DNA of 64,000 bases, taken from Euprymna scolopes (Eukaryota). The notes beneath the pieces are model-generated. The model had not been told where the DNA came from and did no database searches. It worked only from the letters and a program-made list of their open reading frames with translations. This document shows positions 1,348 through 62,219 of this stretch, piece after piece; positions within the stretch are counted from its first letter, which is position 1, and each line of letters starts with the position of its first letter. Location of the stretch: NCBI GenBank assembly GCA_053919585.1, contig CM132807.1. One strand, 5' to 3'. Both the position numbers and the translations under genes were made by a program.

Positions 1348-1554
1348 CACATCGAAGCAAAACAGAGGTCTTTTCGACTTTGGCTGGGGCACAGCAACGA
1401 CATTCACTTTGTATATTACCGGTAGAATCAACATTTGCTTCAGAGTGACAAGAACCACTGCAGGACATAAGGGCGACTGATTCTTTGGACACACAGCCGT
1501 TGACTTTTAGTATCACATTCTTGGTTACTGGTGAACACTTGTCCACAGGTGTCT
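1348..1554 (-). CDS. Exon: C-terminal cystine knot (CTCK), first part
   Basis: 207 nt, phase 1-1, aaacag|...|gtaagt. ETPVDKCSPV...GCVSKESVALMSCSGSCHSEANVDSTGNIQSECRCCAPAKVEKTSVLLRC has the CxGxC and CxCC motifs of mucin/VWF CTCK. Confidence 0.9.
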
Positions 1555-6699: not shown

Positions 6700-8206
6700 G
6701 GTGGCGTATATAATGATTAGAAAGAGACTAATTTGAGATTTTGTCTTTTTATTATTCTATATTTAACTAGCTTTATAAAATGCTTTTTTGCTGATTGCAA
6801 CAATCTGTCCCAAACTCAACCAATGATCCAATGTGTCACATTTTTTCTAGTAAACTTGAAACTAGATACACAAATGAAAACAACTTTTGTTCTGTAAACG
6901 TTTGATAGATTGATTGAAAGATATATACACAAAATATTTGGTTTAGCTCAGATGTTTTTTGAAGATCCTCCACTAGATTGGCAAGTCGATTTTGCGTGCT
7001 GTTGAGACAAGAAAGAATGCTCTTTGTCAAACCTCCCAAGATGTGGCAGTAGTATTCTAAATTCAGACATATCTAAATTTTATATGAGTAGTAAATTGTA
7101 CCAGGAGTCAGGAAATTACGAGAGCGATAGAATGATCTAGTAAGCTTAATAAGAGATTGTAGATGATTGCTACATTTTAGATCTGCAATAAAAGTCAGAC
7201 TTAGGAGTTTATTAAAACATCCAACTTGGATAGTAACAGTATTGTGTCTTTATCTTCTATAAGCTCTAACAATGTCCTCCTGAATTCATTATTAACCATT
7301 ATTTGAAAATTCATCCAGTTTATTTGTTAAACTATTTACATTTGTGATATTTTTAATTTGATGAAGCAACTTTTCTTTTTTTTTTTTTTTTTACAAAAAT
7401 GCAAGTTTTCAAAAGTTTAAGATATTCTCTAGCATAAAACCATTTAAGCAAGTTAAAATATCTGAAGTGGTAAGTTTAACTTGTGTAGTGTTAAAACTTG
7501 TCTTCCTTGTACTAGTAGTTATAAGTTATTTTAGTTATAAGTTCCCTTTATTGTAGAATTATTCAAAGATAAAACGTAAGGATGAATTGAAGACCACATG
7601 CAGACTTTCATGTAATATATTATATTAATTAGTACTTATATTAGACGAAATATATTTGCATAAATAACTTACTTGGTAAATGGAAACAAGCGTCAATTTT
7701 AACCCAGATCTTATAATTCTCTGGATATTTTCCAGATTCAAGAATACTGGGTGATTCCAAAATGATCTTTACTGCTGTCGCCTTTTCACCATTATTAAAT
7801 CGGAATATTCCACCAACATTGCTGCCGCCAAAAACTTTGTGGAATTTTGTTGAGCCTGGACGTTGTACAAGTATCGTGGCTTTATTGACATTGCCTAAGA
7901 GTTCAAGCTTGTTCAGTTCAACTCCTTCAGGGTCATTAGTCAGTTTAATAGTGAGTGTTGGTTTCGGGTCAAATGGTTCAGTTGGAACTCGTACAATCCA
8001 TCCAGGTTTATTAGGTCGGACATCGCTTACAAGACATTCAGGTGTGTATGGTACTCCAGTAATGAATTCATCAGGGATGATGTTTATATCACTCATACCC
8101 TCAATAGACTCACAGCGAACTGCAAATTGAATAAGAGAACAAATATATTAAACATTTAGCAAGTTTCGATTTTTTTATATTTCTCATGAATATTAAAAAT
8201 CACATG

Positions 8207-8240
<34 letters not shown>

Positions 8241-11200
8241 CACGCACACATTTGTTTTAACAAAATTAATATAAAGTACTATTTCCTTGTTGAAAACATT
8301 TGAAAAATATTTAGCAATTTTATAATTAAACCACCAGATACTCATTACGGACTAAATATTCTGTTAGTTAATAATATTATGAATTAAACAAACAAAATAG
8401 TTTTCAATCATTTTTGTGTTCCTTAAAAATATTTAAATCAAGATATATATTGGTACTTTATGAACAAAAAAATATTTATATATTATTTTAATATTTCAAT
8501 TGAGGCTCCATAATTTGTGCATTGATTTTTTTTTTCTGGACTGTTATTTTTATCTTCATAGTTGTTGTTTTACTGCGTTTCATCACCACACAGAAGATAG
8601 AGACGTTGAGTCTCTACAGTTCCATGTAAGCATTGTCTGAAGATAGCGGTTTCAATCCTTCACAAAGCAGGCCAGAGGTGGTGAGACAACAACACCTATG
8701 GAAGGCAGTAATTACTTGGGATACAGGTACAAAACTCAGCATTCCTATCCCTTATCGTGGTTAACCACCTGAAGAAGACCAGAAGGTGAGTTGCTGAAGT
8801 GTGGTGGGACAACAACAACTATAAAGATGAGAATAACAGTCCACAAAAAAAAAAAAAAAATCAATACAAAAGAAAAAATATGCGCTTTAAATAAATAAAA
8901 ATGTATGTAAGGATATTTTATTTGAAAATATACAATACAAACTATCAATAAATCATGAGAAATAAAAAAAAAATGTTCTTAAATATAAATTCACTTACGT
9001 GGTGTGGTAGTTTTCTGAGTAGAGGTTATTGGAGATGCTGAAAAGGAATATATGGTAAAATTACAGTATTATAAGAGAAATTGTTTCAAACATTATTAGT
9101 TATACAAAGTCAAATACTACATAGTTCAGTATTTTTGAAATTTCTGGAAAATAATTTTATGATAGAGTTAAAAATTATATAATTAATTTTATTAAATAAT
9201 CTGCATTTCATAATATTTTCATCAATCTTTTCTTAATTCTATATTTATCAGTTAGTATATTTGTGTATTTATTATAGTTATAAGTATACTTATTTTTTAT
9301 ATACTATTAAAAATATCATGAAATCGAATTTCATTGATTACTGATATTTTTAAGCATCTAAGATTTATATATCTACATTTTTTATAAATTTTCGAAACAT
9401 CTACATTTTTATAAATAATTCATACATAATTTCTGTTATAGAAAAAAACATAAAAATAGGTCAAAAGCATTCTGATACAAAATCTACCTATGGACACTCC
9501 TGAATGTAATTATAGACACTTTGAATGTTATTAAAAAATATCGACATTTTTTATATATTTAAAAAAAAATCTACCTAGCAGTTTTCAGAGGCATTTCGAT
9601 ATAAAACCTATCTATGAACACTCCCAGACACGTAATGTACATTTGTGCGTAATTAAAAAACAAAAACAAATCGACCATTCAGTTTTCAGAGGCATTTCTG
9701 ATATAAAACCTATATAAGAACACTTCTAGGTACATAAAATACATTTGTGAGTAATTTAAAGAAAAAAACAAGCTCAGCAGTTTCGTTGCCCATAGCAAAC
9801 GAACTAACACACACGAATATAAATGTAAGTAGAGATAATGTTAAAACTTGTCTTCTTTGTACTAGAAGTTATAAGTTATTTTAGTTATAAGTTACTTTTA
9901 TTGTAGAATAATTCAATGATAAAATGTAAGAGGTAAGGAAGTGCTCCCTCTTTTAACTAAGATAAATATAGCATTAAGATATTTAATCACTAAACTAATA
10001 AACGCATGAATTGAAGACCACATGCAGACTTTCACTTAATATATTAATTGGTACTTGTATCAGACTATAAATATACTTGCATAAATAACTTACTTGGTAA
10101 ATGGAAACAAGCGTCGATTTTAACCCAGATCTTATAATTCTCTGGATATTCTCCAGATCCAAGAATACGGGGTGATTCCAAAATGATCTTTACTGCTGTC
10201 ACCTTTTCAGCATTATCAAGTTCAAATATTCCACTAATATTGCTGCCACCAACAATTTTGTGAAATTTTGCTGAGCCTGGAAGTTGTGCAAGTATCGTGG
10301 CTTTATTGACATTGCCCAAGAGTTCAATCTTGTTCAGTTCAACTCCTTCAGGGTCATTAGTCAGTTTAATAGTGAGTGTTGGTTTCGGGTCAAATGGTTC
10401 AGTTGGAACTCGTACAATCCATCCAGGTTTATTAGGTCGGACATCGCTTACAAGACATTCAGGTGTGTATGGTACTCCAGTAATGAATTCATCAGGGATG
10501 ATGTTTATATCACTCATGCCCTCAATAGACTCACAGCGAACTGCAATTTGAATAAGAGAAAAATATATTAAATATTTAGCAACTTTATAATTAAACAAAC
10601 AGAATAGACGTTACAGAACAGGTATTCTGATAGTTAATAATATTATGAATTCAACAACAAAACATTTTTGAATCTTTTTGTGTTTCCTTTACAAATGTTT
10701 AAATCAAGATATATATTGGTATTTTATAAACAAAAAAAATTGTTTCAAATAAAAATGTACACTCATGAGCAAAAAAAAAAAAAAAAAAAAATGTGCCAAG
10801 AGCGGAAGAAAGAAGAAATCGATTTTTCAATATTTTCCCATGAATTTTTGTTAATTTTGATTGAAAATTTTTATTTTGCAGATCATTATTATTATAGTAT
10901 ATAATAATAAGTGGAAAAATTAATCCTAAAAATGGTAAGACCGCATCTTGGCGAGGATATAAAAAACCGAATTGCAGGATTAAGGCAGTCGAAAATGACT
11001 TACAAGCAGATTTTTGATATTTTAAGAAAAGAAAATGTGAAAACATCTCTTTCTGCCGTGGTTTGAAGTTGGAAGCTCGGTAAAAACGAAATCTGAATCT
11101 TGTCGCCCTAGAACATCCACTTTGAAGGACGACAACAGGCTTAAATTAAGTGTTTTGAAGGATTGAAAGAAAACTTATGTTGACCATAGCAAAGAATTCA

Positions 11201-17200: not shown

Positions 17201-20200
17201 CCACCCAACACTTCCCTGCGGCAAGTCCACCCCTCCACCGTCATGCCATCACTCGCATGCACATCCACACAATGCACAAATACGTGGACGCTTACTACTC
17301 TGGTGAGTATTACAACATCTACCGAAGGAATAGACAATTCATCAAACCAAAAAAAGCTCGATACTTGAGGGCAGATCTGACCAACCACATGCATCTAAAG
17401 TAAGTGCATCATAAAGGGAACCACACATCAGCAGTATCCCAAAACTACACACACACCCACACACACATTTCAGAGCAGGTCATTCCCAGACTTTAGTCAG
17501 AGGAAGGGGTCTGAGAGCCAGACATCACCTACACATACAATGCAGCCAACTAGTGAATTACATGCCAATGGATCCTGTATATCTACCCTCAAGCCGAGAA
17601 GATCTTGCAGATGCATAAAGGCTCCACAGAGACTAGACCTATAGAGCCCACTACACAATTACACTGATAATACTATATTCTCCCATGAACTGTAAATAAT
17701 AATAAAAATAATTAAAATAATATAAGCCTGTATTTTTTAGCTGTTCTTTTTTATCCATTTTGTATCATAACTATCCTATCGAATTAACCCCCCCCCCCAA
17801 CGACATATGTAAGGATATTTTATTTGAAAATGTACACTACAAACTATTAATAAATCTTGAAAAATCAAAGAATGTTCTTAAATATAAATCCACTTACGTG
17901 GTGTGGTAGTTTTCTGAGTAGATGTTATTGGAGATGCTGAAAAGAAATAAATGGTTAAAATTACAGTATTATTAGAGAAATTGTTTCAGGCATTATTTAT
18001 TAGTCATACAAAGTCAATTTTATGATAAAGTTAAAAATTAAATAATTTGATTAAAAAATTTCTTTTAATAATTTGTATGTTATATTTTTATCTATCTTTT
18101 CTTAATTCTGTAATTATTAGTACATTTATGTGAATATTATCGTTATGAGTACACTTACTTGTGACTATATTATTAAAAATAACATGAAATCAAATTTCAT
18201 TGAATGCTGATATTTTTAAGCATGATGCTTAAAAATATCAGCATTCAATGAAAAATAAACTAACTCACTAAACTAACAAAAGCATGAATTGAACACCACA
18301 TGCAGCCTTTAACTTAATATATTATTTGGTTTTATATCAAACTATTAATATATCTGCATTAATAACTTCTAATAAATGCATGGTCGTATATCAGGCTAAA
18401 TATATTTGTGTAAAATAACTTACTTGGTAAATGGAAACAAGCGTCGATTTTAACCCAGATCTTATAATTCTCTGGAGATTTTCCAGATTCAAGAATACTG
18501 GGTGATTCCAAAATGATCTTTATTGCTGTCGCCTTTTCACCATTATTAAATCGGAATATTCCACCAACATTGCTGCCGCCAAAAACTTTGTGGAATTTTG
18601 TTGAGCCTGGACGTTGTACAAGTATCGTGGCTTTATTGACATTGCCTAAGAGTTCAAGCTTGTTCAGTTCAACTCCTTCAGGGTCATTAGTCAGTTTAAT
18701 AGTGAGTGTTGGTTTCGGGTCAAATGGTTCAGTTGGAACTCGTACAATCCATCCTGGTTTATTAGGTCGGACATCGCTTACAAGACATTCAGGTGTGTAT
18801 GGTACTCCAGTAATGAATTCATCAGGGATGATGTTTATATCACTCATACCCTCAATAGGCTCACAGCGAACTGCAAATTGAATAAGAGAACAAATATATT
18901 AAATATTTAGCAATTTTATAATTAAACAAACAAAATAGACGTTACAGAACAGGTATTCTGATAGTTAATAATATTATGAATTCAACAGGTTTGAATTATT
19001 TATATTTTATCATGAATATTAAAATCACACACACACACATACACACACGCATTTGTTTTAACAAAATTAATACAAAGTAATATTTCCTTGTTAAAAGCAT
19101 TTGAGCAATATAAGTGTTAATAAAGCCAAACAAATGCGTTTCTTTTAAATAAATGAACATATTGTTTATTTAATTACAATTTTTCGGTTTTCAAAGAAAC
19201 CTTTTTCAAGTAGGGATATTTGAAGTTTTTTTTCTTTTTCTTCAAACAAAGTCGAAAAAAATACAAGTTAAAAAGGTTTCTTAGAAACCGAAAATTTGTA
19301 ATTAAATAAACAATATGTACATTTACTGAAAAAAAAAAAAGACGCATTCATTCGGTTTTATTAACATTTTAATATTTAAAATAAATATTGATATCAGCAT
19401 TGCAAAAATGAAATGAATGAAAGCATAGAAGCATAGAAGTCATTGGAAGGCAATTAAAAAATAACTTCATTTAAATTTTCTGAAATAAAATATCCTCTTC
19501 AGAAATGTTTAAAAAATTTTTTTTTTTAATTTTCATTATTGGTTGCTAACACGCTTTAATACTTAAAAACATAGCGTCTGCAAACAAGGCCAATAATAAA
19601 TAATTTTCTTTTTGAGAAACATTGTTACGTAAGTGTAGTAAGATCTTCCAATGCAATGTTAAAATTTCATTTCAATTTTCAGGAATAAAATCTTCTCTTC
19701 AGCATTGATCTTGTCTTTAGTTGTGGGTGCTGGCTGTGAGATCTTATTGTAATGTATTTTGTGTTGTTTTATCACCTCGTCTATCACTGATTTCCTCAAT
19801 TTATGCAGGGTTCATATTTTTACAGTGTTACAGCCTTATAAAATTCATCTTTAACCGAGTTTTAGTTAATTTAATAAACATTTTGTCAGATTTTATTTTC
19901 ATTTTGTAATAGAATATTGTATAGGTAATTTATGGACAAAAAGATTTATTTTAAATAAATAAAACGTACATACGGATATTTTATTTGGAATAGTACAATA
20001 CAAGCTATCAATTAATTATGAAAAATAAAAACAATATTCTTAAATATAAATCCACTTACATGGTGTGGTAGTTTTCTGAGTAGATGTTATTGGAGATGCT
20101 GAAGAGGAATATAGAGTTAAAATTATCGCATTATTAAAGAAATTGTTTCAAACACTTTTTAGTCATAGAAATTCAAATACTACATGGTTCATTATTTTTT

Positions 20201-23200
20201 AAGTTTCTGTAAAATAATTTTATGATAGAGTAAAAAATTATATAATTTGAATAAAAAACTTCTTTTAATAATTTGTATGTCATATTTTTATCTATCTTTT
20301 CTTAATTCTATAATTATATATTTCATTACATTTTCACCCCAAACAAGGCACAGTGCCACTTTGATGTAGAGGCTACTATCAGTGATCTAAGTTGCAGGGA
20401 TACTATGTAGGCAGTTGAGCAACAAGATGTCTGTTCACCTTACACTTAAACTTCTGCATGTCAGTACAGTTGGGAAAGCTAGGACTCTGGAGGGGTTCCA
20501 AATTCTAGCAGTTCTGGAGAAGAAACTGTTAGAAGGCTTTCTTACATTTAGGGATCTCTACTATATAGAGGTGGGACTTGGCTGTTTGTTGACCGTATTT
20601 ACATCAAGGAAGTGCAAGGGCTTGTAGTTCGTCGGAGCATCCACCATCGCAATACTTGTAGAACAGGCAGAGAGATGCAACATTTCGTTGATGGGACAGA
20701 CGTTGAAGCTTTGATGATAGTTCAGGTTGGCGACTCTCTTTGGAACCCTGTCCAGGAGTGAGAGACTAGTAGCAGATGCACCAGCCCAAATGTGACAAAA
20801 ATATGCCGTACATGGGCAAATGGTGGCCTTGTAGAGGTACAGGATACTTTCAGGTGTAAGTAACTTTCTAGCACGGTAGAGAGACACCACCTTCGTCGCA
20901 GCAGCCTTGACAATTCTCTCAATGTATCTGTTCTAACTCATGTCCCCTGTGAATATTAAGTCAAGACGTTTGAAAGAAGTACTTTCAGGTAATGTATCTC
21001 TAGCCGTAGCTACTGGTGGTAGAGAAGTTGTCTTGTAATTATTGAAGGAAACAAGCGTAGTCTTGGCAGCATTAAATGTGACCAGCCATTTTTGTTCATA
21101 TTCTACCACAGATTGGAGGTCTTCCTCTAATGTCTCTGCCATTTCCTTAGATATGTGTTCATTCATTTTCCTCTCATGCCTGTTATAGAGCATGGTGTCG
21201 TCAGCAAATATACCCATTTCAGAGACAATTTTATCAGGGAGTTCATTTATGAATATTAGGAATAATAAAGGTCCAAGGATCGATCTCTGAGGTACACCTG
21301 CATTTATATCACATTGTTTAGATGTATGACCACCGAGGATTCTTCTCTTATTTAGGAAGGATTTAATTATGTTAAGTATTCGTCCAGTGACACCATATGA
21401 TCTGATCTGAGATTTTCACTAAATATATTAATTGGTACTTATATCAAACTAAATATATTTGTGTAAAATAACTTACTTGGTAAATGGAAACAAGCGTCGA
21501 TTTTAACCCAGATCTTATAATTCTCTGGAGATTTTCCAGATTCGAGAACACGGGGTGATTCCAAAATGATCTTTACTGCTGTCGCCTTTTCACCATTATT
21601 AAATCGGAATATTCCACCAACATTGCTGCCACCAAAAACTTTGTGGAATTTTGTTGAGCCTGGACGTTGTACAAGTATCGTGGCTTTATTGACATTGCCT
21701 AAGAGTTCAAGCTTGTTCAGTTCAACTCCTTCAGGGTCATTAGTCAGTTTAATAGTGAGTGTTGGTTTCGGGTCAAATGGTTCAGTTGGAACTCGTACAA
21801 TCCATCCAGGTTTATTAGGTCGGACATCGCTTACAAGACATTCAGGTGTGTATGGTACTCCAGTAATGAATTCATCAGGGATGATGTTTATATCACTCAT
21901 ACCCTCAATAGACTCACAGCGAACTGCAAATTGAATAAGAGAACAAATATATTAAACATTTAGCAATATTTTAATTAAACTAACAGAATAGATGTTACAG
22001 AACAGATATTCTGATATCATAGTTAATAATATTATGAATGTATCAGATTGAACAGTTTTTAAATTTTTTAATGTCCTCTTATGTATATTAAAATATGCGT
22101 GTGTATGTGAAAATGTTTTTGATAAATGTGGAGAGTACTTATTTATTTTCATTAAATTTGACAATAAAAAATTTTAGGAAAATTTGCACAAGGCCCAAAA
22201 TGGGGGGAAGAGGAGTAATGCTAACTAATCTAACCTAGTTAGTTCCTACTTTCACTCTACTTTCACCACAATACTGCATTCATACTATACATCCATCAGC
22301 GTATACATTCTTCATTGATCACCATAAAAACAACATACAATGAGAATCTTCTTAAATCCATATAAGAAAATATGCAACGGGGGGGGGGGCGCATAAAAAT
22401 ATTGTATGCAAAAATAAAATAATATGTACACAGGCAGAAACTTAAAAACTTGACTAAACCTAACTTGTCATATAATTTTGTCATATTTATTACTGGGTAT
22501 CAATATCCTTTCGCCTAAGGCATGTCCAAATACCAGTCAATTCTTGCTCCACTTGCACTGTAGACATGTACGACAGTTACCCACCTTTCAGTAAAGTTTA
22601 ATGAAGAGAGTCTAACCCTGTCAGCCTTAATGCAAACTTTCAAAGAATAACGGAAAATTTGAACAAGACTGAGAAGAAAGAAGGCATCGCCTCTGTAGAC
22701 CACTTTCATATGAGTCGACCAAATCACATTCTTCTTGCAATGCCTAGTAAGTTCGAGATTAAATATTTTTGATCTTATCATTGGTCGGTACCTAACTGCT
22801 ACAGACATTAATAGGTTCCAGTGTGATAGATGACACATTCAGTATGCAGACCATGAGATCTGTAATAAACTCAATCAATGGCGCTACAATGTGGTAGTAT
22901 AAGAAGACATGACATAAAGTCTCGTCTTCATCACCGCAATGCTTACGCAAGGACAAATCCACCAATCCAGCTGATTGAAGTCTTTTACCGACTCAGAGTG
23001 CATCCCTGATTACTAGCCAGGTCAGGGAAGCCTCGTCGTTGTCGAGAAAACCTGACCAGGCACCCAAGGTCATATGTTTTTTTAAACAAAATAATATTAA
23101 TATGGAATCATAAATTTTGCTTTTGAAAAACTCAAAAGCTTGTATGAAAAGCCTAAAAGAAGCCAAGATTAAAAAAGGATATTCCATGGTGTCATGAGGA

Positions 23201-25649: not shown

Positions 25650-25712
<63 letters not shown>

Positions 25713-40700: not shown

Positions 40701-42637
40701 GATAACTGCTTCTTTTTCCAACAATTATCCTCATAACAGGGATCATTTTACCATGTAAAATTGGAAAAATATGGACATAGTATTCATCGTAAGGAATATG
40801 AAATGTCCTTTTCTATCCAATGGTATCAGCATGATATTATATCAATGTATAATGAATCTAGTATTGAATCATAAATTCTGAAACTATTGAAATTAATTTA
40901 CATTATATGGACCAAAAAAAAAATTCAATCTCAACCACCTCTTCGAATAACAGAATAACAGATTTGATAAAATTAAAAAAAAATACCTTGAAAAATTTCA
41001 AAATTTGTATTTGATTTTTAATGTATGTCATTTTAAAATAAGATCCCATTTTGGGTACAATTTACAAAGTTACATTAAAATATGATTTTTTAAACATGGA
41101 TAAAAAATTAAATTTATATTCCATAAAAATGTATCTATTTGTGCATATATAGACATAAACTATGAAAAATAATGTTGAATCTTTCAACGGTTGAGGTTAT
41201 TTTGGAACTTCTAAGTACAATGAATTATTTACATATTTGTAAGTAATTTTGTAATAATTTCTATTGTATATAAAATATTCTAAACATTTGTAAAATTTCA
41301 ACAGTGACTAAGCAGACTGAAATTTTGACACTAGTAAGTTGGATAAACAAATAAACTTTAATATGAGAAAATAGTAATCTAAAAATATATTCCTACTAAA
41401 AATTGTTTTTTATTTATAGTTAAAAATGCTTATTTAGATAGATTAGGTCCAAATAAGCAATTCTAAAGCAGTTTAACTTAAGAGCTCCTACTAGAAATTT
41501 AGGAAGCGTCTTTTAATTAGTAACATTGTGCAAGATGGCTTACAGAAAATGGTAGCAAATATTTGATTAGACATAATTATAACTATATTTTTTTTATCCG
41601 AGACATATATTAATACGCATAACAGGAATAATATTTATATGTAGAATTTGTAAAATATGGATAAAACACTCGGTCTAAAAAATATGAAATATCCTTACTT
41701 GGCAATTTGAAACATGCTTCAATATCCAGCCAAACTCTATAGTTTGCACTCTGATCAGCTTCTTTTTCTTCCAAAATAACCTTGATTGCAGTCACTTTGT
41801 CAAATGTCTTTGAAATATATGGTCCAGTGATTTTATTGGCACCAGGAATTGCTACAAAACCTGTAGAGCCTGGTAATTGTACAAGAATTGTGATCTTCTC
41901 AGCATTACCGCTTACATCAACCTTGACCAACTCAATTCCTTGAGGGTCATCAGTCAGTTTAACAGTGATGCTAGGTTTCGAGTCACCTGATGTAATCGGC
42001 ACAGGTGCAATCCATCCAGGCCCATTAGGTCTGGCATCACTTACGGGAGAGTTTGGTGTGTTTGGTGTTCCACTAATTAAATCATCAGGAATGAGACTTT
42101 TATCATTCATACCTTTAGATGATTCACATCGAACTGTAATTGGAACAAAAATAAAGTAATAATTAAAACTTCATTTAATAACTTAAAATGAAAACATATA
42201 TTAAACAATAAATCTCTGATCATTTAAACTTTAACTTCAATTTTATAAAATCCACTTTGGTAAAGTATTACATAGACAAACAAAGAAGATTTATTTATTT
42301 AAATTTCACTTGAATAATTGATAGTTTTGAAAATTAAATTGTCTTAGGAATCGGAATAATTATTCTTACATATGATACTGTAAATGCTATTTATTTCAAA
42401 CTATTTTCTTAATGTGCGAATCCTTACATTATCAATGAATTAATTCCTCACCTGGTGTTGTTGGAGTACGTCCTGATGTTGTTGGAGTACGTCCTGATGT
42501 TGTTGGAGTACGTCCTGGTGTTGTGGTGATTGTAGGCGTTACTGTTATGTGTAAAAATGGAGAAGCAAACGTTTTTAGATGTTGGATTTGTTTGAAAGAG
42601 TTTATCATACAAAATAGCTATTAGTATATGGAAGTAA

Positions 42638-42698
<61 letters not shown>

Positions 42699-45600: not shown

Positions 45601-48600
45601 TGCAATGAAATAATCAAGCCAGACAATATATCAAAGTTATTATTTTAGTAAGGGAGGGATGATGTCAGTTAAAATGATGAAAAATAATTGTCGAAATTAG
45701 TAACATATCTAAGAATTATGAAAAATGATGGAATGTGAGTTAATTGATTGGTGTGTTTGTAATGGAATAATCTGTCTAGACAATATATCAAAGTTATTTT
45801 TTTAGTAAGGTGTGCGATATGGTGAGTTTAAAGGATGAAAAATTATTGTCGAAATTAGTACCATATCTAAGAATTATAAAAAAATGATGAAATGTGAGTT
45901 AATTGATAGTTGTGTTTTTTTTATGAAATAATAAGCCCATACAATATATTAAATTTATTATTTTAGTAAGGTGGAGGCGATTATGAGGGTTAAAATTATC
46001 ATAAATTGTTGTCGAATATAGTAGCATATTCAATAATTGTGAAAAATGATGAAATGTGAGTTAATTGATAGTTGTGTTTTTTTATGAAATAATCAGCCCA
46101 TACAATATATCAAATTTATTATTTTAGTAAAGGGAGGCGCGATTATGTGGGTTATAATTAGCATAAATTATTGTCAAACATAGTAACATATTCAATAATT
46201 GTGAAAAATGATGAAATGTGAGTTAATTGACCGGTGTGTTTGTAATGAAATAATCAGCCCTGGAAATATATAAAAGTTATTATTTTAGTAAGAGGACGAT
46301 ACAGTTTTAATAAAAGGGCTAGAACAATATGATTGTGCCTTTTTCCATGCTGAACAGAACGCCTACAGAATGACCAGAACGCCTACATATGAAAAATGCT
46401 GCTGTGGAATTTCCACAAGTCTCGCTAGTAATAATAATAATAATAATAATTTGAATGCCTATTTGTAATCCTGTAAACCATAATGTATATAGGAAATGGT
46501 ATTGTTCTGTGCCTCCACTATATTATTCATCATAGATATGTTTTTGTGATCAAGTAAAAGTTTCTAAATAGAATGTTTATTTTTAATCTTTTAAACCTGA
46601 ATATGCAACCATCTTATTGAGTTTCAACACATGCTACACTTAATTACCATTGTAATACTTGGTTTTATTTTAATTGTTGCTATATTGAAAAAAAAAATTG
46701 AAGTTATCAAACTGGAAAAGCGATAAACATTCAATATCAATGGATGCAAAAAGAATGATAAATATCTAGTAAATAAGCGTTGGAAACTTGTTATCATGAA
46801 TATTGAGAAAACGTCATGGCAAGTATAAATAATGCACACAATCTAATGAATATGAAATGTCCTTACTTGGCAATTTGAAACATGCTTCAATATCCAACCA
46901 TACTCTATAGTTTGGATTCTGATCAGCTTCTTTTTCTTCCAAAATAACCTTGATTGCAGTCACTTTGTCAAATGTGGTCGAGATATACGGTCCAGTGATT
47001 TTAGTGCCACCAGGAATATTCTTGAAATCTTCCGATCCTGGATATTTTACAAGAATTGTGATTTTCTTTGCATTACCACTAACATCAACCTTTGTTAGCT
47101 CTACTCCTTCAGGGTCATCAGTCAGTTTAACTGTAATACTGGGTTTCGGATCAGTAGATGTAGTCGGCACAGGTGCAAGCCATCCAAGTCCATTAGGTCT
47201 GACATAACGTATGGGAGAGTTTGGTGTGTCTGGTGTTCCAGTAAGGTATTCATCAGGGATGAGACTTTTATCATTCATGCCCTTAGAAGACTCACATCGA
47301 ACTGCAATAAATGAAATCAAATTTACACATTGTTATAGATATAATTTAAATGTTGTACTCGTAGTGCTCAATTAAATATACATTAGGAAAGATGAAAGAC
47401 TCACATCGAACTGCAAAAGAAGTAAATTAATTGATGAAAAATTAAGTATAGATTTAGAAAATAAACATGGAATCATTGTCATATTATTTTGATATGTAAT
47501 AATGAACCCCTGGCTCAAAACTATTGGAATTTCTTACATAGTATGTGTCATATAATAAATCTTCAATTTTTTCCAATCTTAAAATTTGAAGGATATATCA
47601 TATTATATGTGCAGTTGAAAATACATGTAATGCTAAAACGAGGCTTGATTTTGGGTTCAGTTGACAATTTTAAAATAAGAAATCAATTTTTATCATATAA
47701 AACAACAATAAATTACATGGAATATGTAATTGTTATAAGTTGTCTTCTTCATTGGTGTCACTGCAAAAATATTTATCCTCTTTCTCAGCAATGATGTCAA
47801 ACATTTAAAAACAAACAAATAAAAGCATGAAGTGAAGATCACTTGAGTTATCTTAATTCCTCAACTCTGCCTTGTCTAAATTCATGACAGAAAGAACAAT
47901 AATTCATGGACAATTTAAGATCAATTATTTCTGTATATTGAACCCTCATTTAAATGCTTTTAAAATATGTTGTTTTTGGTAACTTTTTGAGATATCTTAG
48001 GTATAATATGATTTTCTTATTATACTAAACAGTATTTTTAAAGTATTTTTTACACAAAATAATTATTAAAAAAATGAATTTAAAAAATCCTGTTGTACTT
48101 TATTTGAGATTGTGCAAAAATAAGGATAAATCATGGAATATTGTTATTTATTGTGGAAAATAATTAAAAGCTACCATCAAATATATATTCACTTACCTTT
48201 TGTGGTTGTTGATTTTGTAAAGGTTGTTGTTGACGATCCTGTAAATGAAGATTTTAGGAGAAATTGTTTAAAATGTTGTGAGTTACTAGTCATAATATAA
48301 CATTATTCTTTTTGCTGTTTCTATAAATTAATTATATGATTAACTGATTAAGTAGATAATTTAAATAAGAGGCCGTCGTTATTTATCTTGTATCAGTCAT
48401 TGAGGCGTGGGTAGTGTGATATGGTGTTTTCTAGCTGCATCCGATAATATAATTAGTATATATGTTTATGTATATGCAAACATAAACATATATACTAATT
48501 ATATTAATAAATAAGATAACTTAATGTGAATACAAAATGTAAACAAAAAAAATTTGCTAAAAATTGTTGTATGATTATCTATAGATGAAATGGATTATTT

Positions 48601-50470: not shown

Positions 50471-50532
<62 letters not shown>

Positions 50533-52998
50533 ACAGCAGAAATAAGAGAGTGAAGGAAAAAAGCAATTGTGAGACAAGGTCAGTTAAACTACAGAATCAG
50601 TTAATACTAGTTTTACCTGGTTCAGCAGTTGATGATGGGAAAGTCCATTCAATTGTTTCCTCTGTTATAGGTAACACTTCCGTAAAAGCAGTAGTTGTTT
50701 TAGTTGGTGTAGTAGATGGAGAAGTAGTTTGTGTCGAACCTGTATTGAATTTGAACAATAGTGAGTTGGATAAACAAATATGATAACTTAATCTAACAAA
50801 AGAATCTGAAAATATTGTTACAGAAAATTACTCGTATCTCTATAGAAAAAACAAACTTTTTTTATATGCAAGTCGAGGTCAAAATGCTTTCAATTAAAGC
50901 AATTGTATTTTAGGAGCTTCAACAATATTTTTATAAACCATTTTTTAATAGCTAAGCTTCTGCAAGTCCGTTTATAGAAATTGCTAACAACTATTAGACT
51001 GGATATAATTATAGTTATTTTCTTACCTAAGTTATGACTCAATAATATACAAGATGTTTATTGAATAAAAGATAACTGCTTCTTTTTCCAACAATTATCC
51101 TCATAACAGGGATCATTTTACCATGTAAAATTGGAAAAATATGGACATAGTATTCATCGTAAGGAATATGAAATGTCCTTTTCTATCCAATGGTATCAGC
51201 ATGATATTATATCAATGTATAATGAATCTAGTATTGAATCATAAATTCTGAAACTATTGAAATTAATTTACATTATATGGACCAAAAAAAAATTCAATCT
51301 CAACCACCTAACAGAATAACAGATTTGATAAAATTAAAAAAAAATACCTTGAAAAATTTCAAAATTTGTATTTGATTTTTAATGTATGTCATTTTAAAAT
51401 AAGACCCCATTTTGGGTACAATTTACAAAGTTACATTAAAATATGATTTTTTAAACATGGATAAAAAATTAAATTTATATTTCATAAAAATGTATCTATT
51501 TGTGCATATATAGACATAAACTATGAAAAATAATGTTGAATCTTTCAACGGTTGAGGTTATTTTGGAACTTCTAAGTACAATGAATTATTTACATATTTG
51601 TAAGTAATTTTGTAATAATTTCTATTGTATATAAAATATTCTAAACATTTGTAAAATTTCAACAGTGACTAAGCAGACTGAAATTTTGACACTAGTAAGT
51701 TGGATAAACAAATAAACTTCAATATGAGAAAATAGTAATCTAAAAATATATTCCTACTAAAAATTGTTTATTATTTATAGTTAAAAATGCTTATTTAGAT
51801 AGATTAGGTCCAAATAAGCAATTCTAAAGCAGTTTAACTTAAGAGCTCCTACTAGATATTTAGGAAGCGTCTTTTAATTAGTAACATTGTGCAAGATGGC
51901 TTACAGAAAATTGTAGCAAATATTTGATTAGACATAATTATAACTATATTTTTTTTATCCGAGACATATATTAATACGCATAACAGGAATAATATTTATA
52001 TGTAGAATTTGTAAAATATGGATAAAACACTCGGTCTAAAAAATATGAAATATCCTTACTTGGCAATTTGAAACATGCTTCAATATCCAGCCAAACTCTA
52101 TAGTTTGCACTCTGATCAGCTTCTTTTTCTTCCAAAATAACCTTGATTGCAGTCACTTTGTCAAATGTCTTTGAAATATATGGTCCAGTGATTTTATTGG
52201 CACCAGGAATTGCTACAAAACCTGTAGAGCCTGGTAATTGTACAAGAATTGTGATCTTCTCAGCATTACCGCTTACATCAACCTTGACCAACTCAATTCC
52301 TTGAGGGTCATCAGTCAGTTTAACAGTGATGCTAGGTTTCGAGTCACCTGATGTAATCGGCACAGGTGCAATCCATCCAGGCCCATTAGGTCTGGCATCA
52401 CTTACGGGAGAGTTTGGTGTGTTTGGTGTTCCACTAATTAAATCATCAGGAATGAGACTTTTATCATTCATACCTTTAGATGATTCACATCGAACTGTAA
52501 TTGGAACAAAAATAAAGTAATAATTAAAACTTCATTTAATAACTTAAAATGAAAACATATATTAAACAATAAATCTCTGATCATTTAAACTTTAACTTCA
52601 ATTTTATAAAATCCACTTTGGTAAAGTATTACATAGACAAACAAAGAAGATTTATTTATTTAAATTTCACTTGAATAATTGATAGTTTTGAAAATTAAAT
52701 TGTCTTAGGAATCGGAATAATTATTCTTACATATGATACTGTAAATGCTATTTATTTCAAACTATTTTCTTAATGTGCGAATCCTTACATTATCAATGAA
52801 TTAATTCCTCACCTGGTGTTGTTGGAGTACGTCCTGATGTTGTTGGAGTACGTCCTGATGTTGTTGGAGTACGTCCTGGTGTTGTGGTGATTGTAGGCGT
52901 TACTGTTATGTGTAAAAATGGAGAAGCAAACGTTTTTAGATGTTGGATTTGTTTGAAAGAGTTTATCATACAAAATAGCTATTAGTATATGGAAGTAA

Positions 52999-53061
<63 letters not shown>

Positions 53062-56000
53062 AAAAGTATTATATGGGATGAATCTTAAACATGAACCTTC
53101 ATACGGTTCCATTTTTTGTAGCTCATTTTCTTGAGTAAGTGAGTGTGTTTGCTTAACGGCATTTCAACTTCTAGCGGTCATTTAATGCCAAGAAAAGATT
53201 TATTGACATAAGGAGTGTTCAATGTCTTGAAAAGTTTATTTTCAGAAGCAAGATGCTTTAAATTTCCGAAAAGTTTGTTTTTAAATGTAAATTTATATTA
53301 AACATTATAAATTTTCAGATGTAATGAAAAGTAAGCTTAAACATTTATTCCGCATTCCCACATTGTCTGGATAGTTTGTTCCTGTTGGTTACTCTGCTTA
53401 ATCATCATTTTGTTAAATAGTCTCTTTTGATTAGAAGCATGGAATATGTTACCATATGGAAGTAAAAAGACTACATGATTATATGGTAAATTATGTCAAG
53501 AAGATTATGAATGTTGTCTGATAAGCCACGGTCAACAACTAGGAAATATTGGAGAGGTGAGACCTACAATATGTGATGGATTAAGAAGACGGCTGTCTAC
53601 CAATGCTCTATTCCTTAGTGTCAAAGGAAGAGAAATCAGGGAAGACCTATACTAAGATAAAATTTACAGTTAAAAGAAACATTAAATGGAGGAATATCAA
53701 CACAGCCATATGAAAAATACAATATCAAATGGAGAATATTAAGTGGAGGAATATTAACACAATCATATGAAAAACATAAACTGGAACAGTGTAATCATAG
53801 CCTGATGACCTTCATGAAACTGTCATCTATGCTTTGACAAACTGTATATGATGATAATAGGAGCTTTTATTTCTCAAGCAACTTTTTTATTAGATTTAAT
53901 GATAAAATAAATTTGAGATTCTCGTCAGTTCTTCCTGAGCTAATAAAGCTGACTTATAAACAGGTCAGAAAATTCAAAAGACAATAAATTACAAGGAATG
54001 AAGAAAAATAAAGCTTTATTTTTGCCTCAAGATATATAGATTGAACCCCCATTTGAAAACTTAAAAAGTTACTTATGTTTGTAAACATTTTGTATATAAT
54101 AATTTTGCTAATTAATTATATTAATGAAAGACAACAAATTAAGAATGTAATCGATTTTTCCAGCCTTAACCAAATCCGCTTGGAATTGGCTCATAAACTA
54201 ATTAGGCTAAAACAGAAATGAAAATTCAGAATATTTAGTTTATACGATCTTTTCTTGTTGATATAATGTTTTATATTGGGATTAGTTTGAAAAATAGCGT
54301 TTAAGAAAAATCTTTTAAAAATTAAATTTGAAATAAATTGTCAAACATTGAACAAAATATCAAAGTCTATTTTAGCATCAATACATGTTGTAAATTGAAC
54401 TTCTATCTGAACTCAAAACATGTTATTCATATTTATGTTTTACAGCATTTTATTTATAATCTAACGTTCTTATTATATTTAAAAATATTTCAAGCATACT
54501 TTCAGTAAATTAATTATTAAAATAAATAAACAAATGAAAAATGTATATCATTTGAAATTATGCAAAAATATGAATATAAATAAATCATGAAATAGAATTT
54601 TGGAACAAAAATAAAAAAAAATGTCACCAAATAGTAATCTGCTTACCGACTGTGGTAGTTTTCTTTGTGGATGTTGTTGGAGATGCTGAAAAATGAATAT
54701 ACAGTTAAAATAAGCAATATTATTGGATAAATTATTTAAACTGTTTATTCTTCATTCAAAGTTAAATACGTTTTAGTTTTATTTACTTATCTTCAATATA
54801 ACATCATAGTATATTTGTTTGTGTATAAATTAGAAAAAAATAACATTAAAACTATGTTAATTGATTGAGAAAGTTTACATAACTACATTTTTTATAAGTA
54901 ATTTCTTCATGAAACACATTAAGCATATAAACTATAGACATTAGTAAATTGGATGAATGAGATAATTTTATTTCTATAATAAAAGTAATCTGAAAATAAC
55001 TTTGCTAGAAAATTACTTGTATCACTAGTTGTAAATGAAATTGATTAAGGGAGACGTGGCCCGAAATACTCACAATTAAAGCAGTTCACTTCTAGAGATT
55101 ATCACAATACATTCAGAAAAATTTTACTTAATACTATTCTACAACGTCACTTTCAAAAAATATTAGCAACTATTAGCTATAATTATAGCTATTTTGTTAT
55201 CTAAGCCATGTAATATTATTGTAAAAAATACTTTGTAAATAAAAGATACCCGATTGTTTTGCAACAAAATACGCTCGCTAAGATAATACTATTTATAGAT
55301 ATAGATTAGCAAAAGTATGACTAAAACATTCAGTATATGTTATTTGAAATGTCCTTACTTGGCAATTTGAAACATGCTTCAATATCCAGCCAAACTCTAT
55401 AGTTTGCACTCTGATCAGCTTCTTTTTCTTCCAAAATAACCTTGATTGCAGTCACTTTGTCAAATGTCTTTGAAATATATGGTCCAGTGATTTTAGTGCC
55501 ATCAGGAATATTTTTGAAATATTCTGATCCTGGATATTGTACAAGAATTGTGAATTTCTCGGCATTGCCATTCACATCGACCTTTGTTAGCTCTACCCCT
55601 TCGGGATCATCGGTAAGTTTGACTGTAATAGTTGGTTTCGGGTCAAGAGATGAAGTCGGTACTGGTGCAATCCATCCAGACCCCTCAGGTCTGACATTAT
55701 TTATAGGAGAGCTTGGTGTTTCTGGTGTTCCACTAATGAAGTCATCAGGAATGAGTATTTTATTATCCATGCCTGCAATAGCTTCACATCGAACTGTAAT
55801 TGAAACAAAACAATAAGAAAACATTAATTTTTACAATTTTACATGAAAATAACAATTAGTCAATAAATTTAACCCAATGTTTTACTAAAAGCTATGTTTT
55901 TCCATATTTGTAAAGTATTACCTATGCAAAAAATGAATATGATATATTTGTTTCAATTTCACAATTTATACTTTTGAAAATAACATTGTTTCAACAATCT

Positions 56001-56274
56001 TCATAATAACACTTACATAAGATACTAAGTATTGTTTTTTTTATCGTAATCTAGTGTCTTAATGTGTGAATCCTTAAATCATCAATTAATTTATTTCTCA
56101 CCTGGTGTTGTTGAAGTAGTTCCTGACGTTGTTGAAGTGCGTCCTGATGTTGTGGTGATTTTAGGGGTCACTGTTACGTGAAAAAATGTAAAAGCAAGAG
56201 ATATTGGATTTGTTTGAAAGGTTATATTATAGAAATTACCTATTAATGAGAAAGTAGTATTGTCGAAGTATATT

Positions 56275-56343
<69 letters not shown>

Positions 56344-59300
56344 GTGGATATTACAAATATCAGTGAAGATATAGCTTGGATATTTAAGTTAATTATTGGT
56401 ACGTGGTTGTCATTAATTTCCTATCTATAGTAGACTCACATCGAACTGTAAGTGGCACAAAAAAAAAATAAAATAAAATAAAAAATTTCACTGAAATTCT
56501 CTGTAACGGATCCAAGCATTGTATGTAGAGACAGTTGCAAAGAAAGTAAGAACTTCAACACAAACTTTTACTGTAGATAAAAAAGTTCTTTATTTTCTTT
56601 GTTTAACATGCAAGTCGCCAACACGTAGTTAACATCAGTCTGTTTTCTCGTTTTCTCATCCACGTCCACAGTCTGTCATAACATGGTACCAGACACAGCT
56701 TACTGTCATTATACGGCACCAGACATAGTTGGTTCTTCAACAAAGTGGGAAAGAAAAAGACCCGTCTCCTGCTTGCCAAGCCCATTCTCTGTGTCTATGC
56801 ATGCATTCTGCTTTGTGACATCACACCCATGTCACGGCTTGAAATGCTAACCTGCATGTCATTTTAATGGCAGAACCCAACTACGTGATAATTGTTCATG
56901 AAAATAAATATTAGTCAATCAGTCGTCATTTACCTATAAGCCTCAATGAAATAACATTTCTATTTTAGTAAAATATCACAAAGACAATATGAAAGAAATA
57001 TTTGTTTTAATTCCACTCAAATAATTGTTACGTTTGCAAAGGCAATGTCTTAAAAATTTGAAAGTATACTTCTCACATATGATGCTAAGAATAATATTTA
57101 TTTCAGTTTATTGTCATAATATGTGAATATTTAAATCATCAATTAATTAGTTTCTTACCTGATGTTGTTGAAGTACGTCCTGATGTTGTGGTTATTTTAG
57201 GCATCGATTTTCAGTAGAAAAAGAAAAAGTAAAATTTTGTTAGATTTAGGATATTGTAAAAATATTTTCTGTACATTGTATCTTATAAAATTGCTTTTGA
57301 TGTGAAGATGGCGGTTGTAGATAGAAATACTATATCAATTTTAGTGGATATATTTTTATAAAAAAATGGATACTGTATAGTTAATATTATTGTTATGTAT
57401 TTTCCGTCCAGTGATGATGATGATGATGAAGTAGATATAAAAGGGGAAAGAATTGCTGATTTCTCGTTCAAACTCTATTCATCTAACACTTATCGTTGAC
57501 TATTGTTTGACTAGAAGTGGTATTTTTTAGTTCCTTACATCAAGTAGATTCATGTCTTGTCTCAAGCGATTTAAAAAAAAATTACATTGGAATAGACAAA
57601 CAGTGAATGTCTATTTTAGCATCTATACACCTTGCTTTAACCTTTATCTGAAAACTTTAAAAAGTTATTAATGTTTTAAACATTTTGCATATAATCTGAT
57701 ATTTTAATTATAATAAACAGTATCTAACTCAAAGCTTTTAATAAGCTGATAATACAAATAAATTGATAAACATTTAATTCAGGTTTATTTCACTGAAAAT
57801 TGTGCAAAGAATATCAATAAATTATAAAACAGTGTTTATTAGAAAAAATTTAAAATGCCTCCAAATATTAACCGACTTACCTACTGTGGTAGTTTTCTCT
57901 GTGGATGTTGTTATTGGTAATGCTGCAAATAAATATATAATAATTACAATAGCAACATTATTGGAGAAATTGATTAAACTTTATTATTTATTAGTCATTC
58001 AAAGTCAAATAGATTTTTGTTTTATCAAACTTTTTTTGTATTATATTTCTTAGTATATTTGTTTGTTTTTGAATCAGAAAAAATATTAAAACTATTTTAA
58101 TTTTTTTCAGGGTAGCTTTAAACTGAGAAACAAAAACCGGTACCAAAGAGAAATGTCAAAGTCAGTCTACTGTACAGGAAAAAAAGAAAAGCTGATTCAC
58201 ATTTTATATCTATAACGGACGTTTATGCTTGTCACTGACTATTCAAAAAAGAAGTAGAAAAAGACTACATGAATTCAAAATGAAAATCATATAAAAGACA
58301 AAAGCAAAAAGGAACATTTAATGTCACAATAAGAGCAACTATAAGCTATAATTATAGCAATTTCGTTAGCTTAACCATACAATAGTGGTGTAAAAAATTG
58401 TGAAGTTAGATTTTTGGATGTTTTTACAACAAATCTCACAATGATAGGAATAATATGTAGAGTTGGTTAAAATATAGATAAACTACTTGAACTAAAGATT
58501 ATTAAATGTCCTTACTTGGCAATTTGAAACATGCTTCAATATCCAGCCAAACTCTATAGTTTGCACTCTGATCAGCTTCTTTTTCTTCCAAAATAACCTT
58601 GATTGCAGTCACTTTGTCAAATGTCTTTGAAATATATGGTCCAGTGATTTTAGTGCCATCAGGAATATTTTTGAAATATTCTGATCCTGGATATTGTACA
58701 AGAATTGTGAATTTCTCGGCATTGCCATTCACATCGACCTTTGTTAGCTCTACCCCTTCGGGATCATCGGTAAGTTTGACTGTAATAGTTGGTTTCGGGT
58801 CAAGAGATGAAGTCGGTACTGGTGCAATCCATCCAGACCCCTCAGGTCTGACATTATTTATAGGAGAGCTTGGTGTTTCTGGTGTTCCACTAATGAAGTC
58901 ATCAGGAATGAGTATTTTATTATCCATGCCTGCAATAGCTTCACATCGAACTGTAATTGAAACAAAACAATAAGAAAACATTAATTTTTACTATTTTGCA
59001 TGAAAATAACAATTAGTCAATAAATTTAACCCATAGTTTTACTTAAAGCTATGTTTTTCCATATTTGTAAAGTATTACCTATGCAAAAAATGAATATGAT
59101 ATATTTGTTTCAATTTCACAATTTATACTTTTGCAAATAACATTGTTTCAACAATCTTCATAATAACACTTACATAAGATACTAAGTATTGTTTTTTTTT
59201 ATCTTAATCTAGTGTCTTAATGTGTGAATACTTATATCATCAATTAATTCATTTCTCACCTGGCGTTGTTGAAGTAGTTCCTGACGTTGTTGAAGTGCGT

Positions 59301-61995: not shown

Positions 61996-62219
61996 CTGAA
62001 AAAACATTTGATTCAAGAATATACAAGGTGTTGGAGACAAATTTGACCCTTTTTGAAAAGGAAAGAGAAAACATACTTTGGCCAATAGTTGATATGTTCT
62101 CAAAATGCAAAGTGCAACTCTTAGAGAATTTTTTGCTGAATACAAACTCTAAAAAGCTGGTCTGCGCTTCCACCATGGCTTCTAGGCAGGACTTGAGCCT
62201 AGAAAATACAGCCTTCACA

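Follow-up and report, generated by a model that had tools for sequence, protein, structure and literature searches.

A 64,000-nucleotide stretch of contig CM132807.1 from the Euprymna scolopes assembly GCA_053919585.1 (hereafter the window) encodes a protein module that is repeated between positions 7673 and 58950. A sequence-only reading of the window took this module for a highly divergent F5/8 type C (discoidin) domain, possibly of an unmodelled family. To which family the module belongs, what kind of gene carries it, and what it may do in the encoded protein are the questions that this locus raises. A six-frame motif scan of the window found 11 copies of the module (M1 to M11), all on the minus strand at 7674-58948, and the two coordinates given by the earlier reading are the outermost exon ends. 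We conclude with high confidence that the module is a divergent discoidin (F5/8 type C) domain. Quite probably, the locus as a whole is best explained as a mucin-type gene in which divergent discoidin beads alternate with probably O-glycosylated linkers, with binding or cross-linking as the inferred role of the beads.

Relation of the repeated module to discoidin domains

Each copy of the module is a single exon. On its 5' side every copy has a pyrimidine tract and CAG|TT, and on its 3' side CCAA|GTAAG, so that the exon is symmetric (phase 1-1). Not counting the split codons at its ends, the module is 144 amino acids long in M1-M7 (exon of 435 nt) and 148 in M8-M11 (exon of 447 nt), and the open stretches around the modules run for 161-186 codons. 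The window is about 30% GC overall and has no long bacterial-type open reading frames. The alignment of the window modules has 54 invariant columns and contains the motifs listed in the sequence-only reading, C-x4-GM, IPD, GW, P(T/S)(I/L)T(V/I)KL, TA(I/V)K(V/I)IL and (I/V)(E/D)AC, except that IPD-x2-(I/L)-x-G replaces IPD-x-(I/L)-x-G as the correct spacing. The alignment and a pattern check also agreed with that reading in that the window copies lack the Trp of WLQxDL as well as the TQG and RY(V/I)R motifs, from which that reading took ligand specificity to be probably different. The window modules carry two or three cysteines. In the 148-residue subtype (M8-M11), a third Cys is at module position 28 (TPECLV).

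Direct searches did not place the module in a described family. Neither Pfam-A nor NCBIfam gave any match for the window modules at E<=10, which bears out the suggestion of an unmodelled family, and a word-index protein search with one module as the query found no match within the allowed length range. Several results weigh against assigning the module to the discoidin domains. No window module matched PF00754 at E<=10 (gathering threshold 28.2 bits). When the PDB sequences were searched with the family profile, no discoidin chain was found, and the only matches were chance ones to dihydroorotate dehydrogenase (E 0.07). The hhalign comparison with one canonical FA58C sequence was weak (probability 12.7%, E 2e-3), the partner being a single sequence (gathering canonical FA58C from P0012:120-250 returned one protein). 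Finally, what we take to be the PROSITE-style patterns FA58C_1 and FA58C_2, [GASP]-W-x(7,15)-[FYW]-[LIV]-x-[LIVFA]-[GSTDEN]...[QKMT]-G and P-x(8,10)-[LM]-R-x-[GE]-[LIVP]-x-G-C, were fully matched by none of 38 sequences.

The first half of the presumed FA58C pattern was matched by two sequences, P0056:160-315 and P0078:3625-3771. Region 198-300 of P0056 passes PF00754 (38.3 bits vs 28.2, E 1.7e-9), and P0056:164-311 scored 72.1 bits (E 9e-24) over its full length on a module profile that was built after the P0056 and P0012 rows had been removed. In BLASTP, M7 and this linking domain were 26% identical over the whole domain (E 2e-7), with the aligned pairs CESSKGM/CAIKEGM, IPDEYI/IPSESI, RPEGPGW/RPSSTEGW, KPSITVKL/KPWLEIDL and EACFH/FACFH. 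From this alignment, the T/S-I-T-V-K-L strand of the module is the counterpart of the discoidin WLQxDL strand, since KPSITVKL stands opposite KPWLEIDL. The second module of the same protein, P0056:343-494, gave a co-linear sub-threshold match to PF00754 (E 3.2e-4, 21.3 bits); P0056:164-311 is the only family member above the PF00754 threshold. Through this intermediate sequence, which belongs to both sets, the comparisons support homology of the module with PF00754 and not merely a similar fold. In a 36-sequence family alignment, C140 is invariant and C2, M8, R34 and N76 are nearly so, with conserved blocks at G-M, I-P-D, R-P...G-W, K-P-x-phi-x-phi-x-L-T, G-N-V and A-C-F.

We then compared predicted structures with known ones. 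AlphaFold2 on the 36-sequence alignment gave a model with a predicted local distance difference test score (pLDDT) of 95.0 and a predicted template modelling score (pTM) of 0.89, with no weak segment. With an 8-sequence alignment the pLDDT was 74, the N-terminal third being poor, and the ranking of fold matches was the same. The model was compared by VIA-align with 48,161 representative PDB chains, without the Foldseek pre-filter. Ranks 1-16 were all eukaryotic discoidin domains (Z 13.4-15.2, root-mean-square deviation 2.2-2.8 A, 127-133 of 144 residues), the top matches being neuropilin-1/2 b1 and b2, factor V/VIII C1/C2, CASPR2, DDR1/2 and discoidin I. Foldseek found DDR2, neuropilin and factor VIII (FVIII) C2 at E ~1e-5 with template modelling (TM) scores up to 0.73. 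The discoidin-like fold proposed from the sequence therefore stood, the AlphaFold2 model, VIA-align and Foldseek all putting eukaryotic discoidin domains first. The next ranks were IFT25 (Z 13.2), bacterial F5/8C (13.0) and CBM32 (12.9 or less). This gradual fall of Z, from 15.2 for discoidin to about 13 for CBM32 and IFT25, belongs with the unfavourable points above; it means that membership of the superfamily is well established by the fold search, and membership of the eukaryotic discoidin branch less so.

For the step to the eukaryotic discoidin branch, the assignment rests on the linking sequence and on the cysteines at the two ends. Such a pair is characteristic of animal discoidin domains and is not known as a mark of CBM32. 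Model residues 1..144 aligned on 273/274..428 of neuropilin-1 (NRP1) b1, 2019/2020..2173 of FVIII C1 and 2173..2329 of FVIII C2. By these ranges, C2 and C140 of the module fall within one residue of what we take from the literature to be the canonical disulfide cysteines of NRP1 b1 and FVIII C1/C2. A C2-C140 disulfide probably clasps the barrel.

An alternative is that the module resembles F5/8 type C as a structural analogue alone, or through very distant kinship within the clan. It would then be a jelly roll of the galactose-binding-domain-like type (CBM-like or DOC/APC10-like) and form its own family, unrelated to hemolectin-type discoidin. The lack of a direct Pfam match for the window modules, the discoidin chains in the PDB missed by profile-to-sequence search, and the presence of CBM32, IFT25, DOC and SUN domains at Z 11-13 all fit such an analogue. 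On the other hand, P0056:164-311 is in PF00754 by the Pfam threshold and is at the same time a strong member of the module family, the top 16 structural ranks are all eukaryotic discoidin, the terminal Cys pair is of the animal discoidin type, and relatives have the module adjoining canonical FA58C domains. We therefore consider the analogue very improbable and the module a divergent discoidin domain.

The likeness to the PF00754 discoidin domains (neuropilin b1/b2, factor V/VIII C1/C2, DDR1/2, CASPR2, discoidin I) covers the beta-barrel, the size and the positions of the end cysteines. We also read the same order of elements in both, namely C..GM, I.D..I, R...GW, an x-phi-x-phi-L strand, a G-N/Q-G turn and a final phi-x-phi-x-x-C, and the family member P0056:164-311 retains WLEIDL. 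Unlike those domains, the window copies have T/S-I-T-V-K-L in place of the strand with the WLQxDL Trp, and are without TQG and RY(V/I)R. While the known proteins have one or two such domains, the window gene has 11 or more tandem beads between Pro/Thr/Ser (PTS) linkers.

Gene layout, splicing and relatives

A VWC-like cysteine-rich domain, which scores just below the Pfam cut-off, lies upstream of the module array, and an exon for a C-terminal cystine knot (CTCK) lies downstream of it (Table 1). The gene order in the window is VWC, linker and module eleven times, and CTCK, the arrangement of gel-forming mucins at their C-terminal end. The window thus holds the C-terminal two-thirds of a gel-forming-mucin-like gene. 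In mucins and VWF the cystine knot serves for dimerisation, and PTS tracts carry O-glycans. What speaks against the mucin reading is that the VWD part is not within the window; the gene continues past the upstream end of the window, and by analogy with the relatives described below it would be linked to an N-terminal polymerising VWD part.

Splice joints were read from contigs of public RNA runs placed on 25000-30990, the runs including one 'mollusc metagenome' (oligo-dT RNA-seq) and two 'invertebrate metagenome' runs (poly(A) RNA-seq); these contigs give splice joints and not expression levels. The joints 27084|27666, 28100|28765 and 28889|30849 are all GT..AG on the minus strand, and the contigs have 0-1 mismatches. 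Both predicted ends of M7 were matched by RNA, and M7 is spliced in frame to three linker exons: a 72-nt Pro/Thr/Ser exon encoding TGPTTGSTSTGTPTTTSTPLVTT, a Pro/Thr/Ser exon of about 126 nt encoding (STSTTSGPT)n that is spliced straight onto M7, and a 42-nt mini-exon, SPITTSTKKTTTT, spliced after it. From these three exons, the linker is about 80 residues per bead. A scan for S/T/P-rich open stretches found them between all modules, the three RNA-joined exons being the proven ones, and the Pro/Thr/Ser linkers are probably O-glycosylated. The modules all lie in one mollusc gene, which is transcribed and spliced.

Some RNA joints appeared to 'go back' by about 3.9 kb. Circular or shuffled splicing was considered for them and rejected: a paralogue of the mini-exon with one mismatch was found by copy search at ~33537-33578, and this near-identical copy at ~33.5 kb collapses the k=31 assembly graph, which explains the joints. 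Another joint, 28102 to 27664, connects a module end to a module start. It comes from a contig only about 91% identical to the window, and therefore probably belongs to a paralogous mucin gene at another locus.

Three pairs of module exons are identical, including at the DNA level (M1 and M2, M3 and M5, M4 and M6), so that the 11 exons hold 8 distinct module sequences. M3-M6 are carried by an 8.1-kb tandem duplication with 98.9% identity (36401-44501 vs 46744-54871), and M1/M2 by an 825-bp duplication with 97.9% identity (55340-56163 vs 58499-59318). Among the older module paralogues, the ratio of non-synonymous to synonymous substitution rates (dN/dS) is 0.31-0.37, and these paralogues are under purifying selection. 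For M10 compared with M8, M9 and M11, dN/dS is ~1 on few changes (17-20 non-synonymous and 5-6 synonymous), which could reflect relaxed constraint, diversification or a gene-conversion patchwork.

The identical exons raise the question of whether the repeats might be non-functional, as pseudo-exons, transposon-carried fragments or copies inflated by an assembly artefact. The three identical pairs and the 98.9% duplicate of 8.1 kb could be a mis-assembled haplotype, and retroelements do lie inside the introns. An assembly artefact would at most reduce the copies from 11 to about 8, and all 11 frames are open with their splice sites kept. Together with the exactly spliced poly(A) RNA contigs, the purifying selection and the conservation of the family across phyla, this makes non-functional repeats the least credible explanation that we considered, with hardly any weight. 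That the repeats are not due to chance follows from the long open stretches in 30% GC DNA, the dN/dS of 0.31-0.37, the conserved splice sites and the exact RNA splicing. A tblastn search of the window with all relatives found no exons beyond the 11 modules. At 56396-56554 on the minus strand, an open stretch that ends in ...FFFVPLTVRCES and then diverges looks like the beginning of a module exon, with its acceptor and opening codons kept and the rest lost.

Since the domain scans left the protein unassigned, we searched with a hidden Markov model of the window modules (E<=1e-3). The module family is small, with 67 cluster representatives among 1.84 billion. This search also gave the taxonomic range: the named members are all spiralian, from chiton, octopus (Octopus bimaculoides LOC106875009), Argonauta (Argonauta hians), annelid (P0008 and P0016, Dimorphilus gyrociliatus) and flatworm. 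The best profile matches were P0001, a protein with a single module (201 bits), and then P0002 (200 bits, E 1e-54), which is the 'mucin-2-like' protein XP_064614628.1 of the chiton Liolophura sinensis with seven modules between PTS tracts. The VWFD protein P0003 of the flatworm Macrostomum lignano has EGF, three VWD-C8-TIL assemblies, VWC and four C-terminal modules, and its cluster-mate P0078 from the same species has five modules. P0089 also has three VWD-C8-TIL assemblies. VWD, C8, TIL or VWC domains occur in the module relatives P0003, P0016, P0056 and P0089, and PTS regions are also found in relatives; the named members are for the most part mucin-like proteins with VWD, TIL or VWC. In P0012, a canonical F5_F8_type_C domain (128-242) stands directly before the module (268-414), and in P0056 a module comes after the PF00754-positive linking domain.

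The chiton protein P0002 resembles the window gene in its bead-and-linker design. The strand in its modules, YIQLDL, has remained closer to that of discoidin domains; these modules differ from the window modules in being only ~30% identical to them and in having an extra Cys beside the C-terminal Cys. If unpaired, this extra Cys, like the Cys at position 28 of M8-M11, could form intermolecular disulfides. Pfam assigns no domain in P0002, and its annotation is by similarity only.

Regions 563-683 and 730-838 of P0056 and 544-643, 895-993 and 1102-1188 of P0012 matched the module profile far more weakly (E 1e-5 to 0.1), and these may be still more divergent beads of the same fold. Two other proteins, P0023 (3347 aa, 22 partial stretches), which bears the name of a bacterial repeat protein of the TIGR02543 family, and P0066 (982 aa, 9 stretches), repeatedly matched a 35-45-residue piece of the profile only. 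These matches are probably a chance resemblance of strand repeats and not membership.

Possible role of the beads

Lang et al. 2016 (PMC4948705) described the F5_F8 domain as characteristic of lophotrochozoan gel-forming mucin-like proteins, and placed the F5_F8_type_C domains of insect hemolectin after three VWD-C8-TIL units. Hemolectin, hemocytin and the lophotrochozoan mucin-like proteins are secreted, polymer-forming VWD-C8-TIL proteins with discoidin domains behind the third D assembly; the module relatives share VWD, C8, TIL and VWC domains with them, and the window gene has the PTS regions and C-terminal cystine knot of the gel-forming mucin and hemolectin type. Unlike the hemolectin-type proteins, the window gene amplifies the discoidin-type domain and interleaves it with PTS linkers through the central region. 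The module probably derived from discoidin domains of a hemolectin-type ancestor, and the array probably grew through duplication of exon-intron blocks, the symmetric exon phases keeping the reading frame through each duplication.

CysD domains of about 110 amino acids with 10 cysteines occur in MUC2, MUC5AC and MUC5B. Like the window modules, they are small folded units without glycosylation, set into the PTS regions of a polymeric mucin, with the same position and probably the same logic; their fold and sequence are unrelated to the discoidin barrel of the window modules with its two or three cysteines. CysD domains may form non-covalent cross-links (PMC3195396). By analogy, the beads may hold the place of the CysD domains of vertebrate mucins.

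We propose that the modules would be binding sites of a secreted mucin, folded and resistant to proteases and placed at intervals along its glycosylated chain, and that the beads may bind glycans, microbes or other components of mucus or matrix through loops at one barrel end. Such binding would cross-link the gel or trap particles, as has been reported for the discoidin domains of insect hemolectin and hemocytin. A passage in PMC4015701, citing other work, states that hemolymph of Drosophila without the hemolectin discoidin domain failed to aggregate bacteria. We put a binding or cross-linking role forward tentatively, as somewhat short of an even chance. A more specific version seems doubtful to us: the beads may be a spiralian counterpart to CysD, lectin-like and reversibly binding the protein's own O-glycans or microbial surfaces, so that they would set gel strength and trap microbes, with bead number and type changed by skipping or duplication of the phase 1-1 exons.

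The main alternative for the function keeps the same fold and family. Here the beads would have no ligand and would serve only to space or pack the glycosylated polymer, as rigid units that resist proteases and fix its spacing and stiffness. The motifs of the discoidin binding end (the WLQxDL Trp, TQG and RYVRI) are lost in the window copies. Further, the variability among paralogues is 64% in loops and 64% in strands; the loops being no more variable than the strands, there is no sign of diversifying binding loops. On the other hand, the dN/dS of 0.31-0.37 suggests more constraint than a bulk spacer would have, the loop residues R34-P35, G39-W40 and G75-N76 are nearly invariant across phyla, and the discoidin domains of VWD-type polymers are functional binders according to the same passage on hemolectin. 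On balance, pure spacers seem rather unlikely to us.

Whatever the role of the beads, the module is a divergent subfamily of a known domain in a known protein class and not a new kind of protein. The unusual point is that the discoidin domain has here gone from single accessory to main repeated building block. The standard family models miss an entire branch of discoidin domains, and automatic annotation therefore shows spiralian mucus proteins as if they had no domains. The 36-sequence alignment can seed a further family model within the galactose-binding-domain clan, and the module is a concrete, expressible 145-residue unit for research on invertebrate mucus and adhesives (binding of glycans, lipids or microbes). 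These results extend the published remark on F5_F8 as a mark of lophotrochozoan mucin-like proteins and overturn nothing known.

Coordinates and intron elements

Table 1. Positions in the window of the module exons, linker exons and terminal domains of the mucin-type gene.
Feature	Position	Strand	Basis
Module exon M1, 145 codons, phase 1-1	58516..58950 (coding 58517-58948)	minus	motif scan, splice context, alignment; ends by homology to RNA-verified M7
Module exon M2, coding = M1	55359..55793 (coding 55360-55791)	minus	motif scan, duplication comparison
Module exon M3	52060..52494 (coding 52061-52492)	minus	motif scan, alignment
Module exon M4	46867..47301 (coding 46868-47299)	minus	motif scan, alignment
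Module exon M5, = M3, within 8.1-kb duplication	41699..42133 (coding 41700-42131)	minus	motif scan, duplication comparison
Module exon M6, = M4, within 8.1-kb duplication	36524..36958 (coding 36525-36956)	minus	motif scan, duplication comparison
Module exon M7, both ends RNA-verified	27666..28100 (coding 27667-28098)	minus	spliced RNA contigs
Module exon M8, 148-residue subtype	21477..21923 (coding 21478-21921)	minus	motif scan, alignment
Module exon M9, 148-residue subtype	18424..18870 (coding 18425-18868)	minus	motif scan, alignment
Module exon M10, 148-residue subtype	10094..10540 (coding 10095-10538)	minus	motif scan, alignment
Module exon M11, 148-residue subtype	7673..8119 (coding 7674-8117)	minus	motif scan, alignment
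Pro/Thr/Ser linker exon, 72 nt, phase 1-1	30849..30920	minus	RNA joint 28889|30849, translation
Pro/Thr/Ser linker exon, ~126 nt	28765..28889/28890	minus	RNA joints 28100|28765, 28889|30849
Linker mini-exon, 42 nt	27043..27084	minus	RNA joint 27084|27666
Predicted Pro/Thr/Ser linker exon	within 59252-59362	minus	S/T/P-rich scan; boundaries predicted
Predicted Pro/Thr/Ser linker exon	within 56094-56420	minus	S/T/P-rich scan; boundaries predicted
Predicted Pro/Thr/Ser linker exon	within 52796-52978	minus	S/T/P-rich scan; boundaries predicted
Predicted Pro/Thr/Ser linker exon	within 50600-50827	minus	S/T/P-rich scan; boundaries predicted
Predicted Pro/Thr/Ser linker exon	within 48192-48302	minus	S/T/P-rich scan; boundaries predicted
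Predicted Pro/Thr/Ser linker exon	within 42435-42617	minus	S/T/P-rich scan; boundaries predicted
Predicted Pro/Thr/Ser linker exon	within 40230-40457	minus	S/T/P-rich scan; boundaries predicted
Predicted Pro/Thr/Ser linker exon	within 37849-37977	minus	S/T/P-rich scan; boundaries predicted
Predicted Pro/Thr/Ser linker exon	within 33481-33633	minus	S/T/P-rich scan; boundaries predicted
Predicted Pro/Thr/Ser linker exon	within 24681-24884	minus	S/T/P-rich scan; boundaries predicted
Predicted Pro/Thr/Ser linker exon	within 20043-20147	minus	S/T/P-rich scan; boundaries predicted
VWC-like cysteine-rich domain, then Thr/Ser-rich stretch	61852..62025, in open stretch 61720-62148	minus	Pfam VWC E 7.6e-6, 26.6 bits, cut-off 27.6
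C-terminal cystine-knot (CTCK) exon, phase 1-1	1348..1554	minus	Pfam Cys_knot E 2.2e-6, 28.4 bits, cut-off 24; splice sites read

The intron between M10 and M9 contains a degenerate long terminal repeat (LTR) retroelement at ~12000-17650 on the minus strand, with a GC content of 45% vs 30% around it. Its content is gag, an aspartyl protease, a short reverse-transcriptase fragment with YIDD, RNase H with DUF7047, and an integrase; direct repeats resembling LTRs are present at ~13.1-13.45 kb and 17.17-17.4 kb, and a second integrase-like fragment is on the plus strand at 12448-13021. Non-LTR reverse-transcriptase fragments were found in introns on the minus strand at 20936-21415 (Pfam RVT_1, E 1e-11), only ~60 bp downstream of module exon M8, and at 29088-29468.

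Satellite arrays with a period of ~160 bp are present at 34500-36400, 44500-46300 and 62350-63280, with some copies mutually inverted. They flank the duplicated block, and are also found upstream of the VWC exon.

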